Below are positions 6,783 to 33,900 of a stretch of DNA of 64,000 nucleotides, in pieces. The notes beneath the pieces are model-generated. The model made no database searches and was not told where the DNA came from. It saw only the letters and a list, made by a program, of their open reading frames with translations. A program made the translations under genes and the position numbers. Origin of the DNA: Octopus bimaculoides (taxonomy: Eukaryota); assembly GCF_001194135.2 (NCBI RefSeq), contig NC_068985.1, positions 35,983,991 to 36,047,990 on the forward strand, written 5' to 3'. Every line of letters begins with the position of its first letter. The first letter of the stretch is position 1.

Positions 6783-7996
6783 TCAGTTCATGGAATCAAA
6801 AGATAATACAGGGGTTTTATCATCTAACAACTTTGAAAGTTTCTTTGATCTTCGTATGCTCCATACAATCACGAATGCAATTGTTAAAATACTTGCAGTA
6901 CCAAAAATGGATGCAAGGATAAGTGTTCTTTTCTTGTGAAGATTGCTTTTCAGTTTTTCAAATTTGTTACTGCTACTCTCAGTGGTAGAATAAGATATGA
7001 TATTATCCCTTCCTGAGGTGTAAACGGTAAAACCTTTGCTTGGTTTGGTAACTTTATTTCCTACAGGTGTTGTCTCAGTTTTTTTGTGTCCATTTGTGTT
7101 ATGATGAAGTAAAGTTGTTGGTAGTATATTGTTAGTTGTAGATGCTATAGATGTTTTGTGTGTAGGAGTATTGGTATTAAACATCTTTGTACTGTTCTTT
7201 ATAATGTCCAATATGGAAACTGTTGAAATATCTTTACCAGGATACAAAGTTGTAAATAATTTTGAAATGCTTTTGTTTGAATGATTTTCCATTGTTGTAC
7301 TCATTATTGAGCTTGGGAGATTTGTACCGTTCGTTGATGTCCTTGGTGAAAGGGTTGTTTTGATGGTTGTTGTTGTTAGTTCTGATTCAGTAGTGGTTGG
7401 TAATGCTGCAGTTGTAGCTGTTGATTGTGTGGTTGTAGTTGGTGGTGGGGTTGTAGTTATTGGTAGAGTGGTGGTAGTTGGTGCTTGTGTGGTTGTGGTT
7501 GGTGGTGTGGTTGTAGTTGGTGGTGGGGTTGTAGTTATTGGTAGAGTGGTGGTAGTTGGTGCTTGTGTGGTTGTGGTTGGTGGTGTGGTTGTAGTTANNN
7601 NNNNNNNNNNNNNNNNNNNNNNNNNNNNNNNNNNNNNNNNNNNNNNNNNNNNNNNNNNNNNNNNNNNNNNNNNNNNNNNNNNNNNNNNNNNNNNNNNNNN
7701 NNNNNNNNNNNNNNNNNNNNNNNNNNNNNNNNNNNNNNNNNNNNNNNNNNNNNNNNNNNNNNNNNNNNNNNNNNNNNNNNNNNNNNNNNNNNNNNNNNNN
7801 NNNNNNNNNNNNNNNNNNNNNTGTGTGGTTGTAGTTGGTGGTGGGGTTGTAGTTATTGGTAGAGTGGTGGTAGTTGGTGCTTGTGTGGTTGTGGTTGGTG
7901 GTGTGGTTGTAGTTATTGGTAGAGTGGTGGTAGTTGGTGCTTGTGTGGTTGTGTGTGGAACTGGTGGACAAGAAGTTTCTGTTTGGCGCCCATTTT
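6783..7996 (-). CDS. MAM-mucin-TM protein, exon 5 (end of MAM-like domain, Thr/Pro mucin stalk, TM helix, cytoplasmic tail, stop)
   Basis: Acceptor tttcttttcag|AA at 7996 (phase 1); frame (E)NGRQTETSCPPVPHTTTQAPTT... continues across the gap into track ORF 6783-7304; TM LILASIFGTASILTIAFVIVWSI then RRSKK; TGA at 6783-6785. Confidence 0.9.
7430..7950 (-). repeat. Coding minisatellite (78-bp and 60-bp units; TTTTQAPTTTTLPITTTPPPTTTTPP)
   Basis: ggttgtagttattgg recurs at 7449 and 7527 (78 bp apart) and at 7845 and 7905 (60 bp apart); N gap at 7598-7821 lies inside the array. Confidence 0.9.
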
Positions 7997-9158
7997 CTGA
8001 AAAGAAACAATTAAAATTAAATTAATTTTAATGGTATGAATGGAAACAGAAATAATCTGTATCCCTTACATCATCATATTTCTTATAGTCATAATCTCTT
8101 ACAATTTTCTCTCTTATAAGGTGGGTTTCACCTGTGGACTCTGTGTAAGGTAAGAGTAACAGCTTCATGTGCAGTCTGTTATAAAAACTGTAGCAATGAT
8201 TCAAAACTGAACTGCTAGATAACTGATCAAACACCACGACTAAACCACGATAGTTTCACATGATTGATCTATTAAGCAGCCAATCAGCATGAAGCTGTCA
8301 CATGATGCATTCTTCTAAAATCTTCTTCCACTATCCTATAAAAAGCTGCTTTTGGCATCAACACTCATTCACTCATCTCACCTTTTGCCATGCAGAAAGT
8401 TGAGGCAGCTGAGTGATATGTGCCACCATTCTTACCCCACTAGACAGCCTTTACAGATGACTCAGACAGACAACTCAGGAAGACAGCTAAGACATTTGAT
8501 GCAGATAGATGACCAAGAATCTCCATCACCACAAAGATTGCACAACTGTTTTCAGGTATGTTAGGCAAGTCAAATGTTGCCATATCAAATGCTTGGTGTA
8601 AACTCAGAGCAGTATCTCTTTCCCAGCATGTAATTATTGATGTTGTTCACTGTAAAAGGCCAATGCAGTCTGTCTCAATCTGTGAAAATAAATTCTTCAA
8701 TTAAAATGTTCATGGGTGTTGTTTATTTACTTCTTCACACAGCCCTAGAAACATATTTTCATTCATTAACTCAATCAGCTACCAATGCTGCATTAATGAA
8801 ACACTGTAATATACTCATGACATCTGATGACATAGCCTGCAACTACAAGTTGCAACAAAACCAATGTTATTAAACCAATTGGCAAGCCTAACCGAGTGGA
8901 TTAGTGGACTCTGATCTGAGATTGAAAACTGAAGTGAATTCCTCAAGCCTATATGAAAGCATTGCACACAAAGCTAAGGAATCATTTAACATTACATGGG
9001 ATGGAGACTTGAAGCTACTTTATGGCAACTACTATGTAGTTTGAAGACGGAGATATTTTAGAGTAAAGTGTCTTGGCCAAGAACTCTGTAAAGTGCTAGT
9101 AACAACTGGTTGTCTAGAATACTCTCTATTCTGCAATTCATGCTGACACAGAGAAAGC

Positions 9159-9230
<72 letters not shown>

Positions 9231-9239
9231 AACACACTT

Positions 9240-10510
9240 TGGCATAGGGATACTAATAGTCAGTTGTTAGACCTCAGTATCAAGCTTGAGTGTAAGCTTT
9301 CATAGATTGTTGATGAAACTACTGATGGAAGTACAAAAAAAAAAAACTGCTTGTTCTTTTAGCTAGATTTTATGATTGTAGCACTCAAAAAATTATTGAT
9401 AGTTATTTAATTCTTTTGGAAGCCAAGGATTGCTCTGCTAATGGAATTTTTTTCTCTAGTGAAAGATTCTTCACCGTACATGATATTCCTTATGAAAAAT
9501 TTGACAGGATTTACCAGTGACAATGCTAGTGTAGTAATGGGACGGAATGGAACATATGCTAGAAGCATATATTCATCCCAAAGAGACTGCAGGAATATGA
9601 AGATTTCAGGCATTTACTCTAACAAGTTCTCATAAATTATTACATGTAAATTGTACAAGATGGCTATCTTTAGAACAAGTTGTCAATAGAATAATAGCCT
9701 GCTCTAGTGTTATTTGTTACTACTGCTGCTATTGAAGATGACAACTGTGAAGATTCAAATGTGCTGAACTCATTAACAAATCCAATTGCAGAGGTGTATT
9801 ATGCATTTTTAGCATACATTTTGCCAGATATTACCAAGTTGAACTTAGATTTCCAATCAGAAAGCTATAAAATGCACAAACTGCACAAATTTATTACATG
9901 TAAATCTTAAGGGAATACTGGACAATTATTGTTAAAAAGGAAATTGTGAAAAATAAAGAGCTACATGACTGATCCATCAGTATATCTGAAATTTACAGAG
10001 GAGCAAAAGCTGAAAGCATCTACATAAAGAAAGCTTCATCTATTAGTACAACTGAATTGAAACAATTTTTATGTGTGCCTTGGGAAGGAATTTTTTCAGT
10101 GCTTTTTTGCACATGATTTCTTCCATAATCTGAAGCTTCTAGAAGTACTAGACCCAGTTAGTATTCATGATTACAATGGTCTAAGTTCAATTGTTCCTAT
10201 GGCATGCAAATTTCCAAATATTGTTCAGGAGAATCAGATTGAAGCTCTTAATAAAGAATGGAGAGAACTTAAACTTCAAGATGACATAACTGAAGCTACC
10301 AACCAGAAGATTATAGGGATAACATTTCTAAGGAAAAATGTGGAGATGAAGCTAGTTATCCAGTCCTATCATGCTTTATGTTTCAACTCCTATCATTACC
10401 ACATTCTTCAGCTGCAGTCAAGAGAATATTTTCAATCCTAAATAACATTAAAGTCAAGAATAGGTCTAAACTGCATACCCAAACAATCAATGCTATGCTC
10501 CATTCAAAAA
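9240..10510 (+). pseudogene. Decayed hAT-superfamily transposase
   Basis: Fragments such as NASVVMGRNG, YYAFLAYILPDITKLNLDFQSE, and the C-terminal hAT dimerisation motif LLSLPHSSAAVKRIFSILNNIK; many stops and frameshifts. Confidence 0.75.
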
Positions 10511-10689
10511 GTCCCTCTCTTTGTGAAATACTTCAATTAGTACCTCTCTAAATTTCTGACTGTTATATGGATCTTTAAGCTTCCATATCTTCCTTTCTTG
10601 GACTTGATTGTATCTCTAAGTCTCTGAGTCTCTGAGTCTCTGAGTCTCTGAGTCACTTGTCACTAAATTAGGTCATGTGGTACATAATT

Positions 10690-11640
10690 CCCCAGGGAAG
10701 GACTGTACATTTACAACCAACGGTTTACTTATGGAGACTATAGAATCATTCTGGCTTGTATGTCCATCAGACTGATAAGGTAAAGAGATGGCTGGCTGGT
10801 TTTCTTCAGTTAGTGTAGTAGATCATTATTTGCCTTACAGAATTTCCACAGCCTTGTCCTTTCATCATTTCTAGTGCTAAAACCATAGCCTCCATGTACA
10901 GTATGGAGTCCATCAGCGTGCTGCTTCATATGTCCATTGAAGTTACTAACCATGCATGCTGATAAGATCATTATCATTTATTATATAGGTAATCAGCAAA
11001 AAATCATTGAAATCTGTTCCCCTGTTTATCTGCCAGTCCAGACTGTCAATCATATGCAGAGATGTAACTCACATATTTTCCAAAACTTAGTGTAAGATTA
11101 ACTATCCTATCACACATTCTGATTACCTTGATCACTTTATTTACCTGTAGTAACGCCGTGCGCATGCGTAGTCCGACGCATGCGTGGAATTCAACATCTA
11201 AGCGTTCCCGCTTTTATCACTTTTTCTCGGCTGGCCGGCATTGAGCATGGACGTGTCAAGCTGTCTCTCTCCATCTTTCGAACTCTGGGGACAGCTCATA
11301 TCAACATTCCAACGTCTCAGCAACCATGCTCACTCACAGAAGGTGTCTCAACAACGGACAATTTAAGGCTGTCTATTTACCTCCTTAAATAAATATTGTT
11401 GTGTTGATTAGTTTGGAGTTCTGCATTCTGTTTATATTCTGATTTAATATAGGAAGCAGTTGTACACCTAAAGGTGTATAACCCACTATTCCTATATACC
11501 CATTTCTTTGATAAAATTATACCCACAACTCTAACACCATCGCTATTACCTACATAGAAGCATATGTACCTCTGCTCTGGCATTTCAATGATCATACTGG
11601 ATCTACAAAATATTGTGCCTGCATTGACTGTGGTTTCTCT
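10690..11640 (-). mobile_element. RTE LINE AP-endonuclease region (decayed), split by a solo LTR
   Basis: YICFYVGNSDGVRVVGIILSKKWV | NKVIKVIRMCDRIV ... ISAY ... FNGHMKQHADGLHTVHGGYGFSTRNDE. Confidence 0.8.
11146..11496 (+). mobile_element. Solo LTR (probably Ty3/gypsy), 351 bp
   Basis: Starts TGTAG and ends CTATA (one mismatch from CTACA); 4-bp TSD TACC at 11142-45 and 11497-500; internal AATAAA (~11388); CpG-rich; removing it restores the RTE frame. Orientation inferred from the AATAAA. Confidence 0.75.
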
Positions 11641-12004
11641 AATGCTGTTGTTTTGATAGAAATATCTAGTGAGTGGCCAGGAGATGGTTCTCAATACCCG
11701 AAAAAGCTTGTGCAAATGTTTATGTGTGCATGCAAGCAGAAGAGCTTTGCATGTGTACAACTGCACACATTTTACAATTTAATGAATACAATTTCCCTCA
11801 GATGTTCAGTTGATCAGGTTCAAGCACCTGCAGGTAAAAAAGGGTATGCTGTGGCCTCCACTGGGGAAAAGGAGTGAAAAGAATTACATAGCCTTCTAAG
11901 TCAAGAACAATTGGCAGTAGTGAGATTATATAGCAAACATAAACACAGCACACATACATTACATAGATACATATAAATATACATATATGTATGTGTTTGT
12001 ACAC

Positions 12005-12400
12005 AATCACATGGCTGTGTGGTAAGAAGCTTGCTTCCCAACTACATGGTTCCAAGTACAGTCCCATAGCATGGTACCTTGAGCAAGTGTCTTCTACTAT
12101 AACCTCAGGCTGACCAAAGCCTTGTGAGTGGATTTGGAAGATGGAAACTGAAAGAAGCCTGTCATATTTATACACACACACACACACACACACACACAGA
12201 TGTGTGTGTGTGTTTGTCCCCTACTGCCACTTGACAACTGTTAGTGGTGTGTTTATGTCCTGTAACTTAGCAGTTAGACAAAAGAAACATAGAATGAGCA
12301 CTAGGTTTCAAAAAGTAAGTCCTAGGGTTGATTTTTCCAACTAAAACCCTTCAAGGTTTTTTCTTTTGCTGAAGGATCATGCAGTGCAATAAATATTTAT
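12005..12400 (+). mobile_element. tRNA-derived SINE (abundant family; other copies near 20876-21318, 30306-30710, 40935-41060, 52330-52650)
   Basis: Head ggctgtgtggtaagaagcttgcttcccaac...ggttc, internal (CA/TG)n, shared tail ...cagcatggccgcagtc...tgactgaaacaagtaaaa. Confidence 0.85.
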
Positions 12401-13590
12401 TGAGAAACAAATTCATGACTAGTGAAGTAAGAATCTCACTCTCCCTCTCTTTNNNNNNNNNNNNNNNNNNNNNNNNNNNNNNNNNNNNNNNNNNNNNNNN
12501 NNNNNNNNNNNNNNNNNNNNNNNNNNNNNNNNNNNNNNNNNNNNNNNNNNNNNNNNNNNNNNNNNNNNNNNNNNNNNNNNNNNNNNNNNNNNNNNNNNNN
12601 NNNNNNNNNNNNNNNNNNNNNNNNNNNNNNNNNNNNNNNNNNNNNNNNNNNNNNNNNNNNNNNNNNNNNNNNNNNNNNNNNNNNNNNNNNNNNNNNNNNN
12701 NNNNNNNNNNNNNNNNNNNNNNNNNNNNNNNNNNNNNNNNNNNNNNNNNNNNNNNNNNNNNNNNNNNNNNNNNNNNNNNNNNNNNNNNNNNNNNNNNNNN
12801 NNNNNNNNNNNNNNNNNNNNNNNNNNNNNNNNNNNNNNNNNNNNNNNNNNNNNNNNNNNNTATGAATTTAGATGTTTCAATAACTAGAAATATTTTACAG
12901 TTGGATGCTCTCACTACCCAACAGTGATATTGGTAGCAGCTATACAGTTCAATGCTTCAACTAAGGCTTGAGTTTATTACTCATGTTTCATATGTCAATC
13001 TCTGATCTGTCAGTCTCACATATCATCATCATCATCATTGTCATCGTCATCGTCGTCATCATTATCATCATCATCATCACAATTGCTGTTCCCATTGTCA
13101 TTGCCATTACTGTCGAATCCATTGTTATTGTTGTCAACATCCACATTGTCATTGTCATCATTGTCATCATCATCATCATCATCACCATTTAATATCTGTT
13201 TTCCATGCTGGAATGGGTTGGTTGGCTCGACAGGAGTCGATAAGCTGAAGAAGTGTATCAGGTTTCAATTGTCTATTTAGGCTGGATGCCCTTCTCAATG
13301 TCGACCCCTTTTCAGAGTGTACTAGGTGCTTTTTACATGACACCAGCTCAGGTGTTTTATATGTGGCACTGGCACAGATATTTTTTATGTGGCACCAGCA
13401 TCAGAGGGTTGCTAAGTAACCTCTTAGTTGATAGAGGGAGTAGAACTGATGGAAGTAGTTGTGTGTCAGGTAAGAGGTTAGAGTATGATCGAGAGACAGG
13501 GATAATTGTTTTACTATAGAGGAGATATTTGGCCACCCCAGTAGAACAGGAAGGAGTGGGGAGGTGGAAAAGAGAAAGAAAGATAAAGAG

Positions 13591-13675
<85 letters not shown>

Positions 13676-14039
13676 AATAGATGGTGTGGGAGATGTATTG
13701 GAGCCTACCCTCAGTGAACAGGAGAGTAGGGTATAAATTATAGAGAGGGGATAGAGGAGGATGCTCCATGAGAGTATTGGGAATAGAGGAGGTTAGAGGA
13801 AGATGTTCCATGAGAGTGTTGAGTGGCTTGGAGTGGGGAGTAAGGAACAAAGAGAGAGTATGGAGAGTGTGTGGATAGGCACATGAGAGAGAGGAGGAGG
13901 GCTGCAATGAGTGTTGGGAAAATAGGGGTGTTTTGACAGGGGTCAGATAATTTGAGTGTCAGTGTGAGGGTGCATGGCCACAAAGGACATGCAAGAATGT
14001 GTGGATGGCCATGATTTCAATATCAATTAATTTACTTAC

Positions 14040-14106
14040 CATTCCATATTTTTCCAATCATGACATTTGCTTTACCAAGAAACTCAGCATTAATAATGAT
14101 TTTATC
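14040..14106 (-). CDS. MAM-mucin-TM protein, exon 4 (DKIIINAEFLGKANVMIGKIWN)
   Basis: ttttattctattttag|GAT...AAT G|gtaagt; 67 nt, phase 0 to 1, matching exons 3 and 5 exactly. Confidence 0.85.
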
Positions 14107-17100
14107 CTAAAATAGAATAAAAATAGAATGAGATTGGAAATTTTCAAAATACCATAATCCTTCAGTAGCAGGAATGAATGCTTCAAGAATCATTTTCCCT
14201 AAATATTTGGTTAATAATTATTAATTATAATTAAACATGTAGTAGAGAACTTTATAGTTGTGTTGCTGTTGCTTGTTCAGAAAATTATCCAGGGGATTCT
14301 AAGTAATTGATCAAAGATCAATGAAGAAGTTATTTCCAATAACTGAGTTCCTGTGTCCTAGGAATTTACTGTATCAGACTGATATGGTATAGTAGGAGTG
14401 CAATGGATGTCAGACTAAGTTAGAACTTAAAGCAGTTAGTTCAGAGAAGGAACTGTTTCTGTGTTCTTTGGAACTTATGTAAAAGAGATGGAGTTTGTAA
14501 AGTTAGAATTTTAGCTGACTAGCTATATGGCAGATCAGATATATGACTGACTAGTTATATGGAAAACCAGTTATAGGGCAGACCAGTTAGATGGTATACA
14601 CCTATCCAGTTATACAGTAGGGTGGTACAATTATATCCCAGTGTGGTTATATCATTTGATGTACTGTGTAATGTTTTAATATAATGCTCTACTTGCTTTG
14701 ACCAAATGTACATGTAAAATGATACAATGCTTATCAATGTGTATTTGGTTTTATGAATGTCATGATGGGACTGTAGGGCGATTTTTGTTGTATGTTATGT
14801 ATATTTGGTTTTCCTGAGATGTTGTTGACCAAATATCAACTTCCATTACTTCGTATTTGTGAATATGATTTTTTAATCAAGTGGACAGTAAATAATATAG
14901 CTAAATTAGTTTTAACATATTGAACATAATGAACATAAAATATTAACTTATAGTATATTAAATATAGAAACAACAACTTAAATATTATTTTTAATGCAGA
15001 TGTAATCTCTGAATAATTAATCACTATGATGTATTTTTTAACAAATATGTTTATTTCACTATAATATTTAGGTTAATTCCCAATGAAGAAGTTCTACTTG
15101 TCCAATCTATTTATTTTGAGTTAGCAGAGAACTTAAGTAGTAGAGTTAAAAAATCCCAACCAGCCCAGACAAAGTCCTTTCCATTATCCTTAAACATTGC
15201 ACCCACCCAGAGCTAACTCCTATACTTACTAAACTCTTCAATTTCTCCCTCTCTACAAGGATCTTTGAAAACATGCTACAGTGTGCCTCATTACCTAGAA
15301 AATTACCACCTCCCAATTATTACATTATTTTGGAGACAGCTGTTAACCACAACATTCTCCAATACCTTTCCTTAATGACCACCAGTACAGTTTCTATAGA
15401 ACAAGATCCACCGATGACTTACTCACATATATCACCCATCAGTGGGCTCTCACTTTGGAGAAATTTGGAGAATGGTTTCACACTCAATATCAGTAAAGGA
15501 CAGATCACTTGATATGTAACATTGATTCATAAGAAGTGTGAGAGCTGCAGAATTTAGAAAGTTACTGGGCATCCTATGAATTAACTAATGAAGACAGGAG
15601 CAAATATGAACCAAATGTACATAAAAAAGTACATGTATGCAGGATGAAAGTATGCTTTGAGCTCTTAATGGATGACATCAATGTTTAACATAGCTAAATG
15701 TTTGCTTGAAAATAAATGATATTGAACTCATGGAAACCTTAAAGACAAGATCTAAGATTAAGGTACATGGCAATATAGCTATTTAAAAACTATTTAATAT
15801 TGTCCATTAAGCTGACTTGTCTTCAAGAAGTTTGAAACCTTGAGTGATGTTCTGACAGCCAAACAATGGCCAATCTTAATTTGTGTATCAACTTTAGCTC
15901 TTTTCCAACATTATTGAAAATAATTGTTGTACTTATTTTCTGGCTGAGTTGGTAGAGTATTGGAAAACTAGACAAGATTCTGGCAACTCATATCCTGCTA
16001 CCAGAATATTGCCTCCTTTGCTTATTTTAATCCATTTGAAAATATTAGTCAGATCTGTTGATTCAGTTTTATTTAATACAATGCAAATTAATGTGATTGC
16101 AATTCAGAAGACATAAATTAGCCATTTAGAATCATACAAGACCATTAACTTCACTTGAACATTTATTTGTAATGTGGAGTCAAAAATTTAATTGTTTAAA
16201 ACTGTGTCATTTTCACTGAATAAAATTTGTGCTGCATCTGAAAATTTTTGATAATATTACAACAGATATTGCTAGGGATGTTTCTTTTGCTATTTTTGTA
16301 ATCATTTATCTATGTATAAAACTATTGTCAATTGATCAAGTAAATTTTGTTCTGACAAAGCTCTGCTGATGAAGTCCTGTAAGATAGAAACATGCCTATT
16401 AATCTCACTGTCCTGGTTAATAAAAAGCACTTTCAAAATTTTTTTTTTTGTCACAATAAAAGGTAAATATAAATTTTTAAAGAATTTTTCTGTGAATTCC
16501 ATTTAGTATGCAATTAGGTATTTGATTTAACAGATTATCATGTCACTTTTACTGGCTGAAACTTCCTAGTTCTAGGAAGCTGTGCTTCAAATTGCCTAGT
16601 GGGCACAGCATGAGTTTGTGTGATAAGTTCCTATGGGAAGTGTTACCCACAAAGTCTGTTATCTTTTTCAAAGCTAGTTTTTTAACTGTCATCTACTTAA
16701 TACCTCAGAAAGCAAATGTAAGTTCTGGCCCAATGAACAGACACTTTTGTATTTTCTTCTTATCACTCCCATCATACATTTCAAAGCAAACCTTGTTGAA
16801 TTGCAGCTTAGTTCACATTATGACTGTCCTTAGTATAAGGAGATGAGGCAAAGCTCCCATTACTTCTTAAAGTGCATTGGTTTTCCCAAACAAAATCATC
16901 CTACCATTTTTTCAGGCAAGAACAGCAATAAGAAATGGTCAAGAGATCTCATACAATAGAATTGGTTTTGCGTGTGCACGTATGTGTGTGTGCACATGTG
17001 TGTGTGTATTTCACGTGTGTGCACATGTGTATGTCCACATGTGTGTGCACATGTGTATGTGTCCATGTGTGTATGGTAATGAGCATGTGCTTGCATGTGT

Positions 17101-17295
17101 ATGTATGTGTGTGTGTCTGTGCATGCATGTTCATGTGTCTGTGTTTGCTGTGTTTGCACATGCATGTGTGTCTGTATTCATGTGTCCATTTTATGTCTGT
17201 GTAACCTCATGTGTATGTGTGTTCATGTGTCCATATATATGTGTTTATGTTTATGTGTGTGGGTATTCAAGTGTCCATGTGTGTATCTGTGTGAA

Positions 17296-17328
<33 letters not shown>

Positions 17329-17399
17329 GAGGGGAGAGGGAGAGAGAGAAAGAGAGAAATGATATCAGCAGAAGAATTTCGACAATAAGGAATTCTTAC

Positions 17400-17644
17400 C
17401 AATCTATAATTGCAATTTATGTGAGCCTTTGTCCAGCCATGTGCTGGAGATGCATTACAAGTCCATCTTGTATGATAAGTATCACTAAGCACACCATATT
17501 CAGCACAAATTACTGTTAACTTAACTTTACCATTTCCATTTATTCGATATAAGAAGGAAAAAGGCTTCCCATCTTCTCCGAACATAGCCGCTTGCCATGT
17601 CATTTCTGATGTACATCTGTTTTGTCCAGTGGAAACCATGTAAC
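17400..17644 (-). CDS. MAM-mucin-TM protein, exon 3 (core of MAM-like domain)
   Basis: ttttacctag|GT TAC ATG...AGA TTG|gtaaga; 245 nt, phase 1 to 0; GYMV...FSFLYRINGNGKVKLTV...RW...GWTKAHI resembles the MAM pattern FxYxxxG..LxV..W..W. Confidence 0.88.
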
Positions 17645-18516
17645 CTAGGTAAAACAATGCAAGATGGATGGATGATTAGACCAATACATAGATGAACAGA
17701 CAGATAAGCAAATACTTACATGAAGACAAACAAATTTTTATAAAAATACCTCAGATCATGACTTAATGAACTAATTTACAACATATGAATACATGTATTT
17801 ATCCATTACCCCTGATACAGTCAACACCTCATTATGTGAAATATTGAAATTATAGCATCATTAATTAGAAAATCATATCTTTAAAAACAATGAAGTTGGA
17901 AGATTGTATAACTATTACATTTTTTACATAAAATGTTATCATAAAGATTTAAGTGCATTTTATTTTTCTGTTTTCAGTAAATTTAACATGTGGAAAATAG
18001 CAAGATTTCCATCCTCATGTACCTGATTTTGAAGAGTTTGTGTCAGCCTATGGTCATAGACTTATACATTTTTTTGTTTGTTGTCATTTGTGACTTGCTG
18101 TTCAATACAATACCAAAGGAAGAAGAAAGAGAAACCTTGTATATTACAAACACATACTGTTTTAATGAACCAACTAACAGTGCCAAACAATGACAATCAG
18201 AATGCTTAAAAATGTATTTATAATCCTGATATATACTATATATACTGACAACAACCATGTCACAAATGAGATGTTTGACACCCACCAAATAATATATGTT
18301 TGAGGTAACAGTCTCTGTGCATTTTGAATGTCTAATATATCTCTCCCATGCTGTAATTTTTTTAGTTTTAACATTTCAATACACTGTCTCAGATGAAATC
18401 ACTTTCCAGAAAAGTATATCTTCATTATATATATGTATATATATATATCTGTCTGTTTCTCTGCATGTATGTATGCATGTATGAGTGTGGTGATAATAAT
18501 AATACTTATGACACCA

Positions 18517-18547
<31 letters not shown>

Positions 18548-19169
18548 CACATTCATGCACATACACATGTACATGCAAGCATCTACTCACATGCACATGT
18601 GTGCACATGAGTATGCATGCACATACATAAGTGTGCATGAGCACACATGAACATGCACCTGCACAAATGCATATGCATGCATGCAAACACATGGGCACAT
18701 GCACATATACACTAGTGTCCATATATCTGTATGCATGCATACAATGTACAGATGCACACATGCATGCACATGCACACACATGCACATGTATGCATATAAA
18801 CTCATTTGGCTATGTACAAGAGGTGAGAGTATGCAGGTAGTAAGGCATGAAGAAACGTTGGGGATTGAGGATTTCGGTCCTGCTCATGGGATGATATAGT
18901 TAGTTGGTACAGGCGGTGCAGGGGAGTAGCTGGTACTAAGGAGGTATATCCGGATTGTTAGCAGCCAGTGGTTTGAAATTTATGAGAAAGACATACCTTT
19001 GGTGATAGCAATAGGACAGATTGTATTTTTTGTTGATGGAGACTGCAGGTTGATAGATGACATGCAGGTTTCATGGAGGTAGAACTGGCAATTAAGGGTG
19101 CTGGGAGAATATGGTGGTGCCCTGTCAACAATAGTCCACTTGATGCTGGCTGTTTTATACATTTTGGAC

Positions 19170-19265
19170 ACCCTCAAGAGACGTACCCACCCATATAGGT
19201 TGGTTCTGTACAGGGATGATGGCCTGGCTATCTCAAGCCATATGAATGGGCATGACATGGTTCCG
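19170..19265 (+). mobile_element. Penelope-like RT fragment
   Basis: Plus strand contains LYRDDGLAIS (YRDD catalytic motif typical of PLE RTs). Confidence 0.55.
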
Positions 19266-19267
19266 TC

Positions 19268-20108
19268 TTGAGAGTGGGGAACCCGAAGACTGACAAGAAA
19301 TACTACATGAGAGGCCAGGATGCACAGGGGGAACAGACTGTGGTGGAGCTAGCAGAAAGTGAGGTGGAAGGGGATCTTGGCATCTTGATCGACAAAGGAC
19401 TGACCTTCAGGAACCACATAAACCAAGCAACTGCAAAAGCAAATCGAATCCCTGGAGTCACCCGACGATCATTTGACTTCATCACCCCTGTTGTCTTCGT
19501 CCAGCTGTACAAGTTTCTAGTTCGCCTGATTCTTGAATATGGACACACAGTTTGGCAACCCCGGCATAAAGCAATGTGTTGTGAGTTGGAGGATGTTCAG
19601 AGGCATGCCACCAAACTCATTGCATCCTTGAAAGAAAAGCCATATCCGGAGTGCTTGGCTACACTAAACCTGCCTAGTCTCAAACATCCCCGTCTCAGCG
19701 GAGATATGATCAACATGTATAAAGATACGCACGGCTGTACCTAACCAACCACCCCCAATTCAACTTCTAAGGCAGAAATATGAGAGGACACAGCTTGAAA
19801 TTGAAAAGATCATACTCAACATTAGAAGTAGGCTCAACATTAGAAGCTGCTTTTTTGTACAGCGTGTAACCGCAACCTGGAACTGTCTGCCAAATAGTGT
19901 GATCGCAGCATCATCAGTCAATGCCTACAAGAACAGGCTTGACGCACACTGGGGGGAGCTTCCTGCAAAATTTGATCCTGTCTGTTACTATTAGCTACAA
20001 CTGTCGAAGTGTTGTACCACACATGACAAATTAATTGTACTAGTGGAAAAGGACCTGTGAACAAGCTCCTAGGAGCTTCAACATGGAAACCATCCAGTAT
20101 CTAGTATC
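19268..20108 (+). mobile_element. CR1-type LINE 3' end (RT C-terminus plus tail)
   Basis: DLGILIDKGLTFRNHINQATAKANRI...LYKFLVRLILEY...WQP...LEDVQRHATKLI...L.LPSL; ends in a short ccagtat/ctagtat repeat. Confidence 0.85.
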
Positions 20109-20875
20109 CAATAATTCTTATTACACCAATGATACACACACATGCACACATACACATATACGCACATACACACTCGCACTCACATAAACATATATATACA
20201 CTTATGCTGTTTGTCATTCATGATGCTGTTACTAAGCACACAAGCACCCAAGGTCTTAACTAATACAAAGTCATCTCAGTGACTTTGGCATTGATTCATT
20301 CACCAATGTACTGCAATTGCTAGCCTTGCAAATATAATTGTCTCTTCTCTCTACTTATTCTATCACTACTGCAATGAACCTTCCTCATTTTAACTTGCTA
20401 CTTGAATACCACCTCCTCCAAGTCAAACCAAAACACCTGTCTTTCCTCATCTTCTAACACCTACTGTTTCACACAAGCACCTATACACAAACAATCCTTC
20501 ATCTCTAACGTGTCAACACTCTAGATATCTTGTTTTCGCAGATGTCAGCTTACAGATGTTCAAGCTGAACACGGACTTTATTGATCTAACATTTGAATGA
20601 AAATAGGTTTAATGTCTCATGACTGTGCACTGTCTCAGAGTTGGCCTGAGTAGTGTCAGCTCACAGCCTGGAGGGAAATGTTGAAATCAATGTCTACAAG
20701 TGATGTGATCTAAATTAAAGAATAAAAAAAACATTGATCTAACTGGTCTCCAATGGCTTGCAAATGTTTTGTTTGCTGTCCTTTCCTCTGAACAAAGACA
20801 GAAAAAATGCCAAAACTTAGAGTATCATTTCTGTTGTGTATATGTATATTATTGTGTATATGTATATGTATTTAG

Positions 20876-21318
20876 GTGCAGGAGTGGCTGTGTGGTAAGT
20901 AGCTTGCTTACCAACCACATGGTTCCGGGTTCAGTCCCACCGCATGGCACCTTGGGCAAGTGTCNNNNNNNNNNCCCACCGCATGGCACCTTGGGCAAGT
21001 GTCTTCTACTATAGCCTCGGGCTGACCAAAGCCTTGTGAGTGGATTTGGTAGACGGTAACTGAAAGAAGCCTGTCATATATATGTATATATATGTGTGTG
21101 TTTATGTGTCTGTGTTTGTCCCCCCAACATCGCTTGACAACCAATGCTGGTGTGTTTATGTCCCCATAACTTAGTGGTTTGGCAAAAGAGACTGATAGAA
21201 TAAGTACTAGGCTTACAAAGAATAAGTCCTGGGGTCGATTTGCTTAACTAAAGGCGGTGCTCCAGCATGGCCGCAGTCACATGACTGAAACAAGTAAAAG
21301 AGTAAAGAGTAAAGAGTA
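20876..21318 (+). mobile_element. tRNA-derived SINE, near full length
   Basis: Matches the copies at 30306-30710 and 45655-46015; (aaagagt)n tail. Confidence 0.9.
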
Positions 21319-21774
21319 TGGAATTAGTAACTGGCTGAGACAATAACATGCTTCGTGTAAAACCACTTAACCCTCAACAACAGTCAATTCACCTGGTTTC
21401 AAATCAGTACCATGAGGGCATATATTTCACTAATTAGGTAGCAGGAGAAATTTATAATTGATGAATGAATGGGGAAGGTACTGAGTTCTGTTTGATCTCC
21501 TTGTGAATTCCAACAATGACCAACTCATCTGTTTATGTACCAGGTTTTATATAGTCTGAGCTTCCAGAGTGTGATTTAAGAATAATTTGACTGCTATTTC
21601 TTGGGGATTAATAAATAAGTAAATATTCCTTCATATTTACTCAGACATTTTTGTTGGAACTGTTATATTAATAAGAAGGTAAAAGTAAGATGTGGGTAAA
21701 TGAAGAAAAAATAAGACTTTGTAATACTAATATTTCTCAAGTTTACAGAGAAAAAAAGAGAAAAAAAATCTCAC

Positions 21775-21876
21775 CTTTAGCTCCATCAAGTTGCTTGCTT
21801 GTCCATTTCCAGGAGCATTGTTCATATCCAGTAGACCAACTACACTTTCCGTGTTGGAAACTACATTCCCAGGAAC
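21775..21876 (-). CDS. MAM-mucin-TM protein, exon 2 (SWECSFQHGKCSWSTGYEQCSWKWTSKQLDGAK)
   Basis: 102 nt, phase 1 to 1; donor AAA G|gtgaga; acceptor ...tttcataatataaag| (AAG, weaker). CSFQHGKCSW matches the MAM N-terminal CxF...CxW motif. Confidence 0.85.
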
Positions 21877-23799
21877 CTTTATATTATGAAAATATAAACA
21901 TATTAGCTTTCTGAAAATATTGTGTACTGGAATAGTTTTACTTTATTTTTAATATCAATTTTGTTTTTACATAGACTCAAGGTATTAGGTTTAATATAGA
22001 AAGGGGAATTGAGATTCTGTGATGCTCATACCTTTCTCAATAGATTTAATTGAGTAAGTGGATTAAAATTGTTATATTTAAGACTTCATATTAAACATGT
22101 AACTTAGTCTAATAGTTTACGTTCCTTCATTTAGAATAGAGTTCTCATCTTTCAAGTACTCTTGCCCCAAATGTTTGGTCTATATTAGAAATCACAATGC
22201 CGATAAATTGGTTATTTAACATCAACTAGTTCAAGTTAAAGAATCAGTACAAAAGATTAGTATTGACATTGGAAATCTATTTTCAAATCCTCTCATCAGA
22301 TCTTTATGTGCACTGTTGCTCTTCAAGATAGCTGTCAGACAGAATCTAGGAGTCTAAGAAAAGCTGACTACTCATTTTCTGGTAAGGCCAAGAGAGAATA
22401 TGAAACTCATGGACACAGTGTTTTGTTTGAATACACTTCTTTAAGTCTTACTAGCTCAGATACAGAGTGCATGATTTTCCTTCACAAGATTTCATCTTCT
22501 CTGTATGTATGACACTAAACTTGTTGTTGTTGATGACACTTGGACAGTCACAGCAAACATTTCCTGGGAAAAGAACCGTGATAAGTTTTGACAACTTTAA
22601 TGCCAGAAGTGATGCAATAAAAAGATTGCCTATTTGCTTAGATTGTTAAAATATTGACAAGGTCAATGATAATTGTTAAAGCCACTTAAGGTAGGATGAA
22701 CAGGACTTAAAACAAGGCAGTTTGTGATATAGACTAGTCACTTGTCTGCATCAAAGACAGAGGGGTTGATATTCCTGAATGTAACAAACGATACAAAACC
22801 AGAAAAGCCAGTCCACTTTAACACATTGCTCTCATATGTCTTCTTGAGAAACTGTAGAATATTAAATGCTATGCAGCCCTTGGACAACCGCAAAACAATC
22901 TTTCACATAGCTGCAATAGAATCTTCTGAGAAAATTCCTGCAGCATAATAATTGGCACTCATTCTCTTTAGAAAGGTTATGTCACTTCAGTGCTGCAAAT
23001 TATAGATTCTTCAGGCCTACAAAATCTTTCCTTCTATGAGGAATCATCAAATACTTGTGACAACTAGAAGCAGAATTCAAGAAACTGTCTGAATAGGCAT
23101 TTGTAACAAGTAATATCTGGGAGATGTACTCTGGTGAAAAGAAGAAAGATACTTCAATCAGTAATAAATTGCTCTGTTAAAGCCCAAATCTATAACAATA
23201 ATTACAGAGAGACTAGAACAGATAGAGAAATGGATGGGACTTTACTGAATATCATTGAAGAAAGAAACTTGTTGACCAATCAACTTTGATGGTATTGAAA
23301 GTTTCCCATGTATGATCAAACAAGATGAATTTCCAATAATAGAAGGACTTATGATCAGATGCCATCAGGCAGAGCGCCAAGAAAAACTTGTATTTTGATA
23401 GAGTTCTTTAAAAACAGCATGCCAGTCTTCCTTGTACTTCTGCAAAAGCTTCTCATTCAATGTTGGGAAAGGGCACAGTTCCTCAGGATATGTGAGATGC
23501 CAATATTGTTGCACAATACAAGAACAAAATGTAACAGTAGTGATTGCAATAATTTACAAAGTTATATTTCTTCTTACTTTAGTTGGCAAAGGTTTGCAGA
23601 CAGAATATATCCTCAGTCACAATCATATACCAAGTAATCAACTACAGGCATGGTATTTTCATTGCATCAATTTCAAGAAAATAATGGAAACATAATCAGC
23701 CACCATATTTAGCCTTCATTAACCTAGCAAAGCTTTTGACTTTGTTGTTTAAAATGGTCTTTTAAGATGATAACATTCACTGATTGCAAACCAAATCTA

Positions 23800-25018
23800 T
23801 TGGGTCATCCCATTAATAATGCGTTTTTTTTCAATTGCAAGAACTAAAGGTTGGAGGGGGATGGGATAAAATACCTGCATCAACTTGCTATAAAAGTAGG
23901 CAGTAATTTTACCTTGTACTTATTCTTAGTGAAAGTTTTGAAGAGTGCACTTTAGTTTTAACAGTTATTTTTTCAAAGCTATAATGGAAGTGACAAAGGA
24001 GCATATTTGGTATATTTTGCTTTATGAGTTCAATAAAGGCAACAGCATATTGGAAAGTGCAAAGAATATTAATGCAGTATTTGGGGATTGGGTAATAAGC
24101 ATAAACCAGTGTCAATGGTGGTTCCAGAAATTCCAAGCTGGAAACTATAGCCTGCAAGACAAGCCTCGTCCTGGAAGATCTGTAGAGCTTGATGAGGATA
24201 TCCTGCAAACCCTGGTGGAACAAAATCCTGCTGTAACTGTTGAGGAACTATCAGAGAAGCTTAAATTTGGTCATTCCATCTTTGGTTTACTCTTTTACTC
24301 TTTTATTTGTTTCAGTCATTTGACTGCGGCCATGCTGGAGCACCGCCTTTAGTCAAGCAAATTGACCCCGGGACTTATTCTTTGTAAGCCTAGTACTTAT
24401 TCTATCGGTCTCTTTTGCCGAACCGCTAAGTGACGGGGCCATAAACACACCAGCATCGGTTGTCAAGCAATGCTAGGGGGACAAACAAAGACACACAAAC
24501 ACACACATATACATATATACGACGGGCTTCTTTCAGTTTCCGTCTACCAAATCCACTCACAAGGCTTTGGTCAGCCCAAGGCTATAGTAGAAGACACTTG
24601 CTCAAGGTGCCATGCAGTGGGACTGAATCCGGAACCATGTGGCTGGTAAACAAAATGCTTGGCCACATACAGCGAGGATGACATTGTAAAGGTTGCAGCA
24701 GTTTGAATGGGAAATGATGCCCCACCCATCATATTCGTTGGATACTGCCCCATCTGATTATCATTTATTCCACAATCTTCAAAATCATTTGGACAGAAAA
24801 AATATCAATTCTGTAGACAAGGTCAGAACAGTACTAGAGGAGTAGTTTTCATCACAGACAAGTGAATTTTGGAAGTGGGGCATTGCAAGTCTACCAGACA
24901 GATGGAAGAGCATTGTAGAAAATGAAGGAGAGTATATTTTAGATTAAAAAACTGTTTATCTTAATTTTGAAAAATAAAAAAAGTATAAAAAAACTGCAGT
25001 ATTTATGGGATGACCTAA
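23800..25018 (+). mobile_element. Internally deleted mariner (Tc1/mariner) element with TA TSD
   Basis: TA|ttgggtcatcccattaataat ... atttatgggatgacctaa|TA; HTH ORF from 23984 (MEVTKEHIWYILLYEF...GRSVELDED); C-terminal piece similar to NARPHTARMT...PHPSYSLDTAPSDYHLF. Confidence 0.9.
24281..24652 (-). mobile_element. tRNA-derived SINE inside the mariner
   Basis: Reverse complement of the 20876-21318 family; head slightly truncated. Confidence 0.9.
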
Positions 25019-26543
25019 TAATTTATCATAAGGTCTTTCCATAATGGAATGTTGAACTCTGTATACTATGATGGATCAATGTCTTGTGAATTTGGAAGGA
25101 AAAGCAGAGTTAAATAAGTTTGGTATCTTCTTAATGCTACTCATAAAACAAATACTAAAGATAGGTAAGATGGCTGAATCTGTAATATAGCCAGACTAAA
25201 TGTCAAAACTGGGATAAGAAAAGACTTGGCATTTGCTGATGTTGAAGCTATATCTTTAATCTATGCAGAAGTCTAAAATGTATTATGCACAGATTTTCAG
25301 GAGTTACAATCAGTCACAAGAAGATCCGTGTTATAATCAAAGGTAAGTAACTGGACATAGTATATAAGTTTTAATATCTTGGCTCCATTGCTACAGATAA
25401 CATTGCCTGAGAAAGAAAACTGGGAAGAAATCAACTGGAAATGAAATTATTACTCTCTCAAGACTCACTTAGAAAGTATAGCAGAATAACATCAGAGATT
25501 ATTTGCAAAGAAATACATTTGCCAGGATTGTGTTCTTTGTACAATTATTTATAGCAGTGAATTGTGGACAACATGTTTTTCACAAAAACAACAATTTTCA
25601 TGTGTTCCATATGAAGTGTTCCTGCAGAATCCTTGAGATTTGCTGGCAGGACGGGATTTCCAGGGTAGGCACATCCTCCATGTTTTCTGTTCCCACTCCA
25701 ATGACAACTTTGATAAATTGAAGATGTTCATTGCTTGGATGATGGTCATATTCCAAATTAGGTGGTCTCTGGTGAACTGGCATTTGGGTGTAAAGAAAAG
25801 GTCACCTTTTGCTGAGATACAAAAATGTGTAGAAGTATGACATGAGACTAACACATGGGTAGAAAATATTTCACAAGACCAGGATGAAATAATGTTAACA
25901 GTAATTAGCACACTCTTATATGTATGTGTACATATAAAACTTCTTTTATTTTGGCATGAGGCCAGCAATTTTGAGAGGTAGTGAAGTCGATTTCATCAAC
26001 CCCAGTGCTCAACTGGTACTTATTTTATTGACGCCAAAATAACAAAAAGTAAAGTCAACCCAGCAACATTTGAACTCAGAACGTGAAGTCATAAGAAATG
26101 CCATTAACCTTTTTATTCAGTGTGATAATGTTTTTGCCAGCTTGTCATCTCATGTTTACATGTAAATGCATGTACATATTTATGGATATGTACATGTGAG
26201 TATGTGTGCAAAAATGTGTTTGCATGCATATGTGTGCACAAATATGTGCATGTTCATGTATTTTAAGTGAGCGTGTATATGAGAAAGTATGTGTGTGTGT
26301 GTCTGTATGAGTGTAAGTGAACATGTGTGTGTGTATGTCTGTGTGAACATGTGTGAGTGTGTGTGCATATGTGTGTGAATGTGTGTGTGTGCCTGTGTGT
26401 GTATGCCTGAGGTCTTTGAGAACCATTGACATACAATTGTGCATTTTTTTTTTTTAACCTTACATTAAGCTTTAGGTATATAGATATCAAATTGACTAAT
26501 ACGACATATTTGTTACTTGAAAATAAATCTATTAATGTCTTAC

Positions 26544-26610
26544 CATATGTATATGGAAGGATTCCAATCAGTAAAAGGCAACTAATTTTTGTGACTTGTA
26601 ATATAGACAT
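26544..26610 (-). CDS. MAM-mucin-TM protein, exon 1 (signal peptide MSILQVTKISCLLLIGILPYTY-G)
   Basis: ATG at 26610; basic residue then hydrophobic core; TAT G|gtaaga phase-1 donor joins exon 2 to give ...TYG-SWEC. Confidence 0.8.
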
Positions 26611-26618
26611 TCCGCTTG

Positions 26619-26650
26619 GAATTGAATCTCTCAGTTACAATTATTTTATA
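26619..26650 (-). promoter_or_regulatory. Candidate TATA box plus initiator for the MAM-mucin gene
   Basis: Minus-strand TATAAAA at 26650-26644; YYANWYY match TCAATTC with the A at 26623, 27 nt downstream; no good YAG acceptor before the ATG. Confidence 0.35.
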
Positions 26651-26789: not shown

Positions 26790-26914
26790 CCACCACCGCT
26801 GCTGCCGCCGCCACCACCACCACCACAACCAGCAGCAGCAGCACCACCACCACCACAACCAGCACCAGCACCACCACCACCACCACAACCAGCAGCAGCA
26901 GCACCACCACCACC
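26790..26914. repeat. Compound (CAC)n/(CAG)n trinucleotide repeat running into an N gap
   Basis: caccaccac...cagcagcag units seen directly; the poly-His and poly-Gly ORFs in the track come from it. Confidence 0.9.
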
Positions 26915-27212
26915 NNNNNNNNNNNNNNNNNNNNNNNNNNNNNNNNNNNNNNNNNNNNNNNNNNNNNNNNNNNNNNNNNNNNNNNNNNNNNNNNNNNNNN
27001 NNNNNNNNNNNNNNNNNNNNNNNNNNNNNNNNNNNNNNNAAAATAAAGTACTAGTCAAGTACTGAGGTTAATGTAATTGACTAATCCCCTCCTCCTAAAA
27101 TTACTGACCTTTGCCAAAAATCACAACCATGTTTATTATTATTATCATCATTATCATCGAAGATAGTTATATAACAAAGATAGTTGAGTGTGAGACTAAA
27201 TTTCTTACATAA

Positions 27213-32786: not shown

Positions 32787-33359
32787 CTGCGGGGATTTTT
32801 CAAACCTGGGTTCTCATTCTTAAGTATTTTTCCGATGTTGTTATTATTATTATTATTCAGGTCACTGCTTGGAATCAAACTCGGAATCTTGGGGTTAGTA
32901 GCCCATGCTCTTAAACACTACACCATATGCTCATGGGCAATTATGAAGTGAATTTTAGGGCTTATAAATCTAATCTTTTCCTATCCTTCCTTAATACCGG
33001 TTCCCATATGCTACTCATATCTGCACTAAGTCTGCTTAGGAGGTTGTTGTGTCCTAGTATATGTGCTGCCTCTTTTAGTTTTTGTATTTTTCAGTGGTGT
33101 TCTCTGTCTATTATTTTAACTTCATCCCACAAGGGGAAGTGGTTTCCATTTTTCCATACATGATCAGCTATACCCAATTTATCAATATCTCCTCATGTCA
33201 CAGCTTTGCAATGTTCCTCTACCCTTATTTTGAGGGTGCAACATGTTTTGCCTTTGTATAACCTACCACAACTGCATTGGGATAGAGTATATGCAGTCTT
33301 TGGTCATATTCTCTTCTATTGGGGATTCTATTGGTTTCAATTCCAGGCAGTGACCTGAA

Positions 33360-33363
33360 TAAT

Positions 33364-33403
<40 letters not shown>

Positions 33404-33406
33404 GCT

Positions 33407-33502
<96 letters not shown>

Positions 33503-33510
33503 GCAGCAGC

Positions 33511-33590
<80 letters not shown>
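33360..33590. repeat. (AAC)n/(AGC)n microsatellite inside the Penelope pseudo-LTR
   Basis: Seen directly; source of the poly-N/L/V/C ORFs in the track. Confidence 0.95.
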
Positions 33591-33631
33591 AATATCTTAG
33601 GAATGAGAACCCAGGTTCGACATTCCCCCAG

Positions 33632-33677
33632 AACACCTGATGAAGGCTGGAGAGTACATCTGCCGAAATGTTGTGTT
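33632..33677 (+). ncRNA. Family-A hammerhead motif (decayed)
   Basis: AACAC-CUGAUGA-A-GGCUG..CUGCC-GAAA-U-GUU-GUGUU; C15.2->U and one stem II mismatch. Confidence 0.55.
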
Positions 33678-33738
33678 AATAACAAACAAGATGAGGACAA
33701 ATATCCATCAAATGTAAATAATGTAAATAGAGATTTAA

Positions 33739-33900
33739 ACCTTTAGCATTTATCCATATCCAACCAAAATATTCTACTTGTTTTATGACCAAACTGGTAC
33801 ATCATTGAAATCTTGAAGCTACAAGATAAAGCATGATTAATTTAAAAGAATGTGGATAAAAAAGTGTTACATTCGACAGAGTAATCTGAAGCTAAAGGGT
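33739..33900. mobile_element. Short MITE with piggyBac-like ends
   Basis: ttaa-acctttagcatt ... gaagctaaagggtt; termini resemble TTAA/CCC piggyBac ends; right-hand TTAA not preserved. Confidence 0.5.

Follow-up and report, generated by a model that had tools for sequence, protein, structure and literature searches.

A 64,000-nucleotide (nt) stretch of the Octopus bimaculoides genome, hereafter called the window, contains five open segments on its minus strand between positions 26610 and 6783. A first-pass annotation of the sequence had joined them into one "hidden" gene for a protein with a signal peptide, a MAM domain, a mucin-like stalk and a transmembrane helix. The locus raises the question of whether these segments constitute a single gene, and if so, what kind of protein it encodes. 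We found that they belong to LOC106875480, a gene with five coding exons on the minus strand that extends over about 20 kb. The gene is real, and its predicted product is probably a type I membrane glycoprotein with a signal peptide, a divergent MAM head, a mucin stalk, one transmembrane helix and a short tail.

Exon structure and public models of LOC106875480

The coding exons, the candidate promoter element and a competing last exon are located as follows.

26644–26650, minus strand: TATAAAA box, candidate core promoter, 40 nt upstream of the ATG
26544–26610, minus strand: exon 1, 67 nt, start codon 26610–26608, signal peptide MSILQVTKISCLLLIGILPYTYG, ends in phase 1
21775–21876, minus strand: exon 2, 102 nt, N-terminal part of the MAM domain with CSFQHGKCSW, phase 1
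17400–17644, minus strand: exon 3, 245 nt, core of the MAM domain (GYMVS...FSFLYRINGNGKVKLTV...WTCNASPAHGWTKAHINC), phase 0
14040–14106, minus strand: exon 4, 67 nt, last strands of the MAM domain (DKIIINAEFLGKANVMIGKIWN), phase 1
6783–7996, minus strand: exon 5, 1214 nt including 224 N, from the end of the MAM domain (ENGRQTETSC) to the stop codon TGA at 6785–6783
13016–13244, minus strand: terminal exon in the UniProt model, consisting of a GAT/AAT microsatellite that would encode poly-Asp/Asn

Recomputation of the coordinates confirmed that the five exons join in one frame with cumulative phases 1, 1, 0 and 1, every donor being GT and every acceptor AG. Between the ATG at 26610 and the TGA, the joined sequence of 1695 nt has no stop, and it specifies 564 residues, including 76 X that correspond to a 224-N assembly gap. 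Independent agreement came from the public databases. A search with the exon-5 stalk retrieved RefSeq XP_014779121.1 (P0019), a protein of 336 residues labelled "uncharacterized protein LOC106875480", which could be rebuilt residue for residue from the window with exons 1–4 and with the acceptor and stop of exon 5 unchanged. UniProt holds another model, A0A0L8GPU6 (P0001), a "MAM domain-containing protein" of 237 residues whose exons 1–4 are 100% identical to the window. Since the gene is present in both RefSeq and UniProt, it is not hidden, contrary to what had been proposed. Its MAM label was likewise public already, and the five-exon model is an improved gene model, not a discovery.

The RefSeq model splits exon 5 into two parts, 7996–7881 and 7196–6783, by excising 684 nt (7880–7197) with a GC donor and an AG acceptor. 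With this segment go the gap in the assembly, the greater part of the mucin array and some of the stalk. This GC-AG "intron" looks like a gap-bridging device, and true internal splicing of exon 5 in O. bimaculoides could also account for it. In O. sinensis, isoform X2 of LOC115212404 likewise omits an in-frame internal stretch of exon 5. The exon-5 skips in the two species may be either pipeline work-arounds for a gap or a stop, or real internal splicing.

Related loci of O. vulgaris allowed the exon structure to be compared across species. One of them (L002, OX597818.1:30045210-30108142) carries two tandem five-exon copies, A and B, together with further first exons; the exon lengths and AG/GT positions of both copies are the same as in the window, and their introns are similar in size. 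The other (L004, 29956479-29976970), about 70 kb further along, contains a syntenic gene that is collinear with positions 17996–6047 of the window. Copies A and B share the tail RRSDLLNERRLV with O. sinensis LOC115212404, and are therefore paralogues of the window gene; the tail, together with the collinear order of L004, rules them out as orthologues. The O. vulgaris tandem cluster (L002 and L004) comprises at least four MAM-mucin genes, and tblastn detected no tandem paralogues within the window. The public O. vulgaris model P0005 combines parts of copies A and B into a chimera.

Splice sites and the promoter element were conserved among these genes, three O. vulgaris copies retaining all splice sites. 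Exon 1 is 100% identical to that of P0001 and P0019, and its GT donor is kept in copies A and B. The AG and GT of exon 2 stand at the same positions in both copies, and the splice sites of exon 3 are kept in both copies as well as in the syntenic gene. For exon 5, the TTTCAG acceptor is kept in O. vulgaris, and both exon ends are used by P0019. The TATA box and the sequence of about 40 nt between it and the ATG are preserved in four paralogous first exons of O. vulgaris, two of which have diverged further upstream; the proposed TATA-type promoter is upheld as a candidate. In O. sinensis, where the relatives are LOC115212404 (isoforms X1 and X2) and LOC115212323, RefSeq models share the exon 4–5 junction, and have the mucin region and the transmembrane helix. 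Overall, the O. sinensis and O. vulgaris relatives resemble the window gene in the five-exon layout, a MAM domain that is about 80% identical, the start of the mucin region (ENGPQTENSCPPVPPTTTQAPTT), the stalk and the helix, but they are mostly paralogues, with the tail RRSDLLNERRLV, short mucin arrays, and in some cases frameshifts or a premature stop.

Two observations concern the flanks of the gene. A GGT/GCT microsatellite at 26800–26914 begins some 190 nt before the ATG and extends as far as a gap at 26915–27039, and O. vulgaris has about 544 base pairs (bp) at this position. On the 3' side of the stop, candidate polyadenylation signals are found on the minus strand at 6111 (ATTAAA, 674 nt past the stop), 5854 and 5781 (both AATAAA), and 5649 (ATTAAA).

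The models part at the donor of exon 4. The five-exon model uses the same donor as P0019 and the O. sinensis proteins P0002 and P0003, giving a WNENG or WNEHG junction, whereas the UniProt model and one O. vulgaris model use an alternative donor 4 nt downstream (GGTAA|GTAAAT). If the UniProt model were the true transcript, exon 4 would continue into 13244–13016, and the product would be a secreted MAM protein with an Asp/Asn-rich tail, devoid of mucin stalk and transmembrane helix. The window does yield the exact sequence of P0001 when the GTAAAT donor is combined with a CTTCAG acceptor. Its last exon, however, is a microsatellite, the acceptor AG is changed to TG in copy B, frame-breaking indels are present in both copies A and B, and the RefSeq models of both O. 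bimaculoides and O. sinensis have the other junction. We regard this transcript as very improbable, and comparison with the O. vulgaris copies suggests that the microsatellite exon is probably a mis-annotation. The five-exon model with the whole of exon 5 is the most complete of the three, and, on cross-species sequence comparison, the best supported.

The MAM head and its relatives

Direct reading of residues ~24–170, which had been assigned to a MAM domain, revealed the MAM motifs CSFQHGKCSW (C-x-F-x4-C-x-W) and an F-x-Y-x2-G-x-G strand. The domain contains eight cysteines, six conserved in the family and two specific to Octopus; in the family alignment, C27, C34, C43, C67, C119 and C170 are either invariant or matched. 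The Pfam search of residues 1–175 returned no match to PF00629 even at E ≤ 10, and the O. sinensis proteins P0002 and P0003 were likewise without a Pfam MAM match.

The assignment was supported by more distant relatives. In an exhaustive HMMER search of 1.84 billion representatives, the Octopus profile matched nine proteins, eight of them credible relatives, among which are P0007 (E 4e-15), P0008 and P0010. P0007 scored 38.7 bits against PF00629, for which the cut-off is 26.4, and P0008 and P0010 scored 24.9 bits, just below it. When a profile of nine family sequences was compared with the PDB, it matched the MAM domain of neuropilin-1 (5L73, E 5.5e-6) and that of neuropilin-2 (E 1.3e-4), followed by weak matches to MDGA1, LAST-MAM and meprin alpha (E 0.07–0.5). 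AlphaFold (AF2) supplied with the nine-sequence alignment gave an all-beta model with a pLDDT of 84.5, and the best Foldseek match of this model in the PDB was again 5L73 (E 3e-7, TMq 0.68), with meprin beta (4gwn) at TMq 0.70. Bacterial carbohydrate-binding (CBM) jelly-rolls reached nearly the same scores, and the fold by itself therefore does not single out a MAM domain. Two attempts with the single sequence were set aside: the AlphaFold model (pLDDT 54) was unusable, and the PDB search gave one chance-level match, YpfA (E 0.78).

From sequence homology and modelling, we can conclude that residues ~24–170 represent a compact, divergent MAM domain with a predicted jelly-roll fold. The relatives, the profile, the fold, the motif and the UniProt name agree with the assignment, and a direct match to PF00629 is the part that failed. 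Homologous MAM domains of neuropilin, meprin, RPTPmu and MDGA are the best profile and fold matches, but the octopus domain is shorter (~145 residues against 160–170), falls below the Pfam threshold and has a cysteine pattern of its own. Pfam searches detected no Ig, FN3, PTP, CUB, F5/8C or astacin protease domain, which argues that the protein is not an RPTP of type IIB, a neuropilin or a meprin.

Among the credible relatives, the named ones come only from Octopus or cuttlefish. The other four are from SRA-derived, transcript-like assemblies: L001, L003, L005 and L006 are Logan contigs (SRR27666058, SRR27666087, SRR20545817 and SRR30931881) of 0.9–1.8 kb. The layout has been retained over longer times: the cuttlefish protein and contigs from three SRA projects are 23–30% identical to the Octopus sequence and share its architecture. 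The relatives begin with a signal peptide or an N-terminal start, carry the domain once or twice, and continue with a Ser/Thr-rich region. P0007, which has two MAM domains, as well as P0008 and P0010, extends to a transmembrane helix and a short tail; the tails of these three carry N-x-L-Y or NPLY, a motif missing from the Octopus tail. The match to P0006, a bacterial repeat protein of 2015 residues in which a 50-residue stretch of the profile matched 12 times, was rejected as a low-complexity artefact. A second, word-indexed search with the family alignment gave no further relatives, and the searchable library of literature yielded no description of a MAM-mucin family in octopus, cephalopods or molluscs. 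The proposal of a lineage-specific protein is borne out within this scope: the gene belongs to a small, tandemly duplicated family of MAM-mucin membrane proteins, whose named members are all cephalopod and which is undescribed in the searchable literature.

These results also bear on whether the five segments might be chance open frames, or pieces of different transcripts. Exons 1–4 were joined in two independent public models, and the splice sites persist in the O. vulgaris copies as described above. It takes exons 2 to 5 together to give a complete MAM domain, and a confident fold was predicted for the joined sequence. In distant relatives, the order of signal peptide, MAM domain, stalk and transmembrane helix recurs on single, intronless Logan contigs of 1.4–1.8 kb. 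The possibility of unrelated segments is effectively refuted.

The stalk, the assembly gap and the predicted membrane anchor

Exon 5 contains the following features downstream of the end of the MAM domain.

7428–7953, minus strand: Thr/Pro mucin-like tandem array of 20-residue and 26-residue units (60 and 78 bp), broken by the gap
7598–7821, no strand: assembly gap in the mucin array, 224 N, its length an estimate
6924–7427, minus strand: non-repetitive Ser/Thr/Asn-rich stalk (QSTATT...NLHKKRT), ~78–81% identical to O. vulgaris P0005 and P0020
6855–6923, minus strand: transmembrane helix LILASIFGTASILTIAFVIVWSI, maximum of 2.43 in a 19-residue Kyte-Doolittle window
6786–6854, minus strand: basic cytoplasmic tail RRSKKLSKLLDDKTPVLSFDSMN, 23 residues

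Every structural element of the layout from signal peptide to 23-residue tail, as first proposed, was recovered. The N-terminus is hydrophobic (segment 1–21) and has the cleavage context TYG|SW, so that residues 1–23 are the predicted signal peptide. The stalk region is 55% Ser, Thr and Pro, with 35% Thr, and contains tandem repeats; N-x-S/T sites number five in the whole protein. The second hydrophobic segment (517–542) harbours the helix of 23 residues, which is followed by RRSKK and is kept in O. sinensis P0002 and O. vulgaris P0005 and P0020. The tail contains no Pfam domain, and corresponds to the tail RRSKKHSKLLDDKVPVLSLDAMK of the syntenic O. vulgaris gene. In both O. vulgaris and O. 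sinensis proteins, the exon-5 stalk, helix and tail are recognisable. A signal peptide, Ser/Thr/Pro repeats, one helix and a short tail fit a type I tethered mucin, for which O-glycosylation is predicted. CD164/MGC-24 and endomucin have the same signal peptide, single transmembrane helix and short tail, with a Ser/Thr/Pro repeat stalk that varies between species, but they have no MAM head, and homology to them was not demonstrated; O. sinensis P0002 matched MGC-24 weakly (E 0.085).

Whether stalk and anchor are read in the same frame as the MAM head depends on the gap in the mucin array. Tandem Repeats Finder gave a 60-bp period upstream and a 78-bp period downstream of the gap, each with 97% matches and each a multiple of 3. 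The frame upstream is set by the splice phase, the frame downstream is the sole open one, and both read TTTTQAPTTTTLPITTT. In-frame joining requires a gap length of 2 modulo 3, which the 224 N fit. The counterpart of this gap in O. vulgaris is a repeat of about 322 bp. Two further gaps, at 12453–12860 in intron 4 and 20965–20974 in intron 2, lie outside the coding exons. All three gaps are spanned collinearly by contiguous O. vulgaris sequence, and the scaffold joins are therefore sound.

Other observations bear on whether the reading frame is maintained. The chance that about 200 non-repeat codons contain no stop is ~1e-6 at the composition of the window (stop frequency 0.069 per codon), and the stalk differs from that of the syntenic O. 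vulgaris gene by two indels of 15 and 30 nt, both multiples of 3. In neutral simulations at 8–12% divergence, a between-species value and hence an upper bound for one lineage, the 488 readable codons stayed stop-free in only 1–3% of runs. Support for a maintained reading frame from the indel lengths and simulations is modest. Two other tests of coding were discarded. The ratio of non-synonymous to synonymous rates (dN/dS) was uninformative as proof of coding, its values being not significantly different from 1 and the shifted-frame controls alike. Introns align to O. vulgaris at 85–90%, matching the exons, and a comparison of exon with intron conservation could not serve as a test.

Several observations weigh against the reading of LOC106875480 as a gene for an intact, membrane-anchored MAM-mucin protein, beginning with the absence of a PF00629 match described above. 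Exact-protein look-ups for P0001, P0002 and the exon-5 open reading frame returned no record, and gave no transcript evidence for the locus. The RefSeq models and the transcript-like contigs of distant relatives speak indirectly for expression. Because the length of the gap is an estimate, continuity of the reading frame over 7598–7821 is, from the sequence, plausible and unproven; the claim of one stop-free frame, which had been made "the gap aside", holds for the two flanks. The syntenic O. vulgaris gene has an array unlike that of the window, with TTTT[RT]P units of 18 bp, one of which measures 16 bp as assembled (~L004 9806–9818). This 2-bp deletion parts the MAM domain from the stalk and transmembrane helix, and annotators made two genes of it, P0004 and P0020. 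In O. vulgaris copy A, exon 5 is frameshifted twice and a conserved Cys is replaced by Ser, and O. sinensis isoform X1 stops just short of the transmembrane helix. For dN/dS, the values against the syntenic O. vulgaris gene were 2.0 in MAM exons 3–4 (23 non-synonymous and 3 synonymous changes) and 0.82 in the stalk and transmembrane region, and those against copy B were 2.4 and 0.71, respectively. None was significantly different from 1, out-of-frame controls were similar, and purifying selection was not detectable by this measure between Octopus species.

It may therefore be asked whether the gene is real but the anchored product is not made, a hidden frameshift, stop or decay leaving a secreted MAM-mucin or nothing functional. 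The split O. vulgaris gene, the truncated isoform X1, the frameshifted copy A and the dN/dS values indistinguishable from 1 are all in keeping with such a loss, as is the retention of a 191-residue MAM-only paralogue in both O. sinensis and O. vulgaris. On the other hand, the two flanks of the gap give the same Thr/Pro peptide in compatible frames at the length given, and about 200 codons of stalk and transmembrane sequence are free of stops with indels in multiples of 3. Copy B is undamaged over its whole length from start codon to stop, tail included. The 2-bp deletion falls within an extended, almost perfect repeat and may be either real or an error of assembly, which is plausible in such sequence. 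On this balance, loss of the anchored form is rather unlikely, although it is the most serious of the alternatives, and a membrane-anchored product remains the reading that we prefer.

A candidate 3' exon was noticed at 9035–9117 on the minus strand, with a TCTAG acceptor and a short open frame KQPVVTSTLQSSWPRHFTLKYLRLQTT ending in a stop. The last exon of O. vulgaris P0004 maps to window positions 9115–9035. This segment could be an alternative exon for a secreted, MAM-only isoform, or an annotation artefact.

Other features of the window are found in the introns or outside the gene. Intron 1 contains, on the plus strand at 23942–24349, a fragment of a mariner/Mos1-type transposase whose open reading frame matches Pfam HTH_48 (E 8e-19). 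In intron 2, an open reading frame of 162 residues at 19256–19741 on the plus strand has no Pfam match, and by eye we take it to resemble the C-terminal part of a reverse transcriptase of a non-long-terminal-repeat retrotransposon; the adjoining stretch 20112–19260 fails to align to the O. vulgaris copies. The same intron carries at 20855–21320 an insertion of ~465 bp relative to the O. vulgaris copies, which contains the 10-N gap, matches several other sites of the O. vulgaris locus at 75–77%, and is probably an interspersed repeat. A CAG/CTG run of ~100 units at 33266–33743, open as poly-Gln, poly-Leu and poly-Cys, gave spurious tblastn matches to low-complexity tails. Rfam matches were absent from the window.

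Turnover of the family and a possible role

The octopus members of the family show birth-and-death turnover, several copies being damaged or truncated. As judged from sequence divergence between Octopus species, the window gene appears to evolve at about the neutral rate, and may be either diversifying or weakly constrained. Zonadhesin, a sperm-egg adhesion protein that is also fast-evolving, offers a similar layout (three MAM domains, mucin, four VWD domains, EGF, transmembrane helix). Like zonadhesin, the octopus protein is of predicted type I and places MAM N-terminal to a mucin array. It differs in having a single MAM domain, in being far smaller, and in a stalk that runs straight to the transmembrane helix, with no Pfam match to VWD, C8, TIL or EGF in either half of the protein. 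Zonadhesin is an analogy of layout, and not a family to which the octopus protein would belong.

An adhesion, gamete or epithelial-surface role, as first proposed, is still an inference, and so are ligand binding and the tissue of expression. The predicted O-glycosylated stalk would hold the MAM domain far above the membrane or glycocalyx, where the head may bind itself homophilically or find a partner, either in the extracellular matrix or on another cell. MAM domains bind in these ways in RPTPmu, meprins and zonadhesin. Since the tail is short and has no recognisable signalling domain, the protein would most likely act as an adhesion, recognition or glycocalyx component rather than as a signalling receptor.

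The practical value of these results lies in annotation, as the public models of the locus and of its O. vulgaris counterpart all disagree: RefSeq bridges the gap with a GC-AG intron, UniProt terminates in a microsatellite, and the O. vulgaris annotation splits or fuses adjacent copies. A bolder hypothesis, which we hold to be a long shot, is that the cephalopod MAM-stalk family forms a recognition system for gametes, self/non-self or microbes. In such a system, variation of the head and of stalk length would tune specificity, with arrays remade between species and heads evolving at or above the neutral rate. The family would become important only through expression or binding data that link it to a particular recognition process, and it would deserve attention if its expression pointed to gametes or to immune or epithelial surfaces. 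Tandem duplication and fast evolution fit surface recognition molecules, and this may be the function that the family serves in cephalopods.

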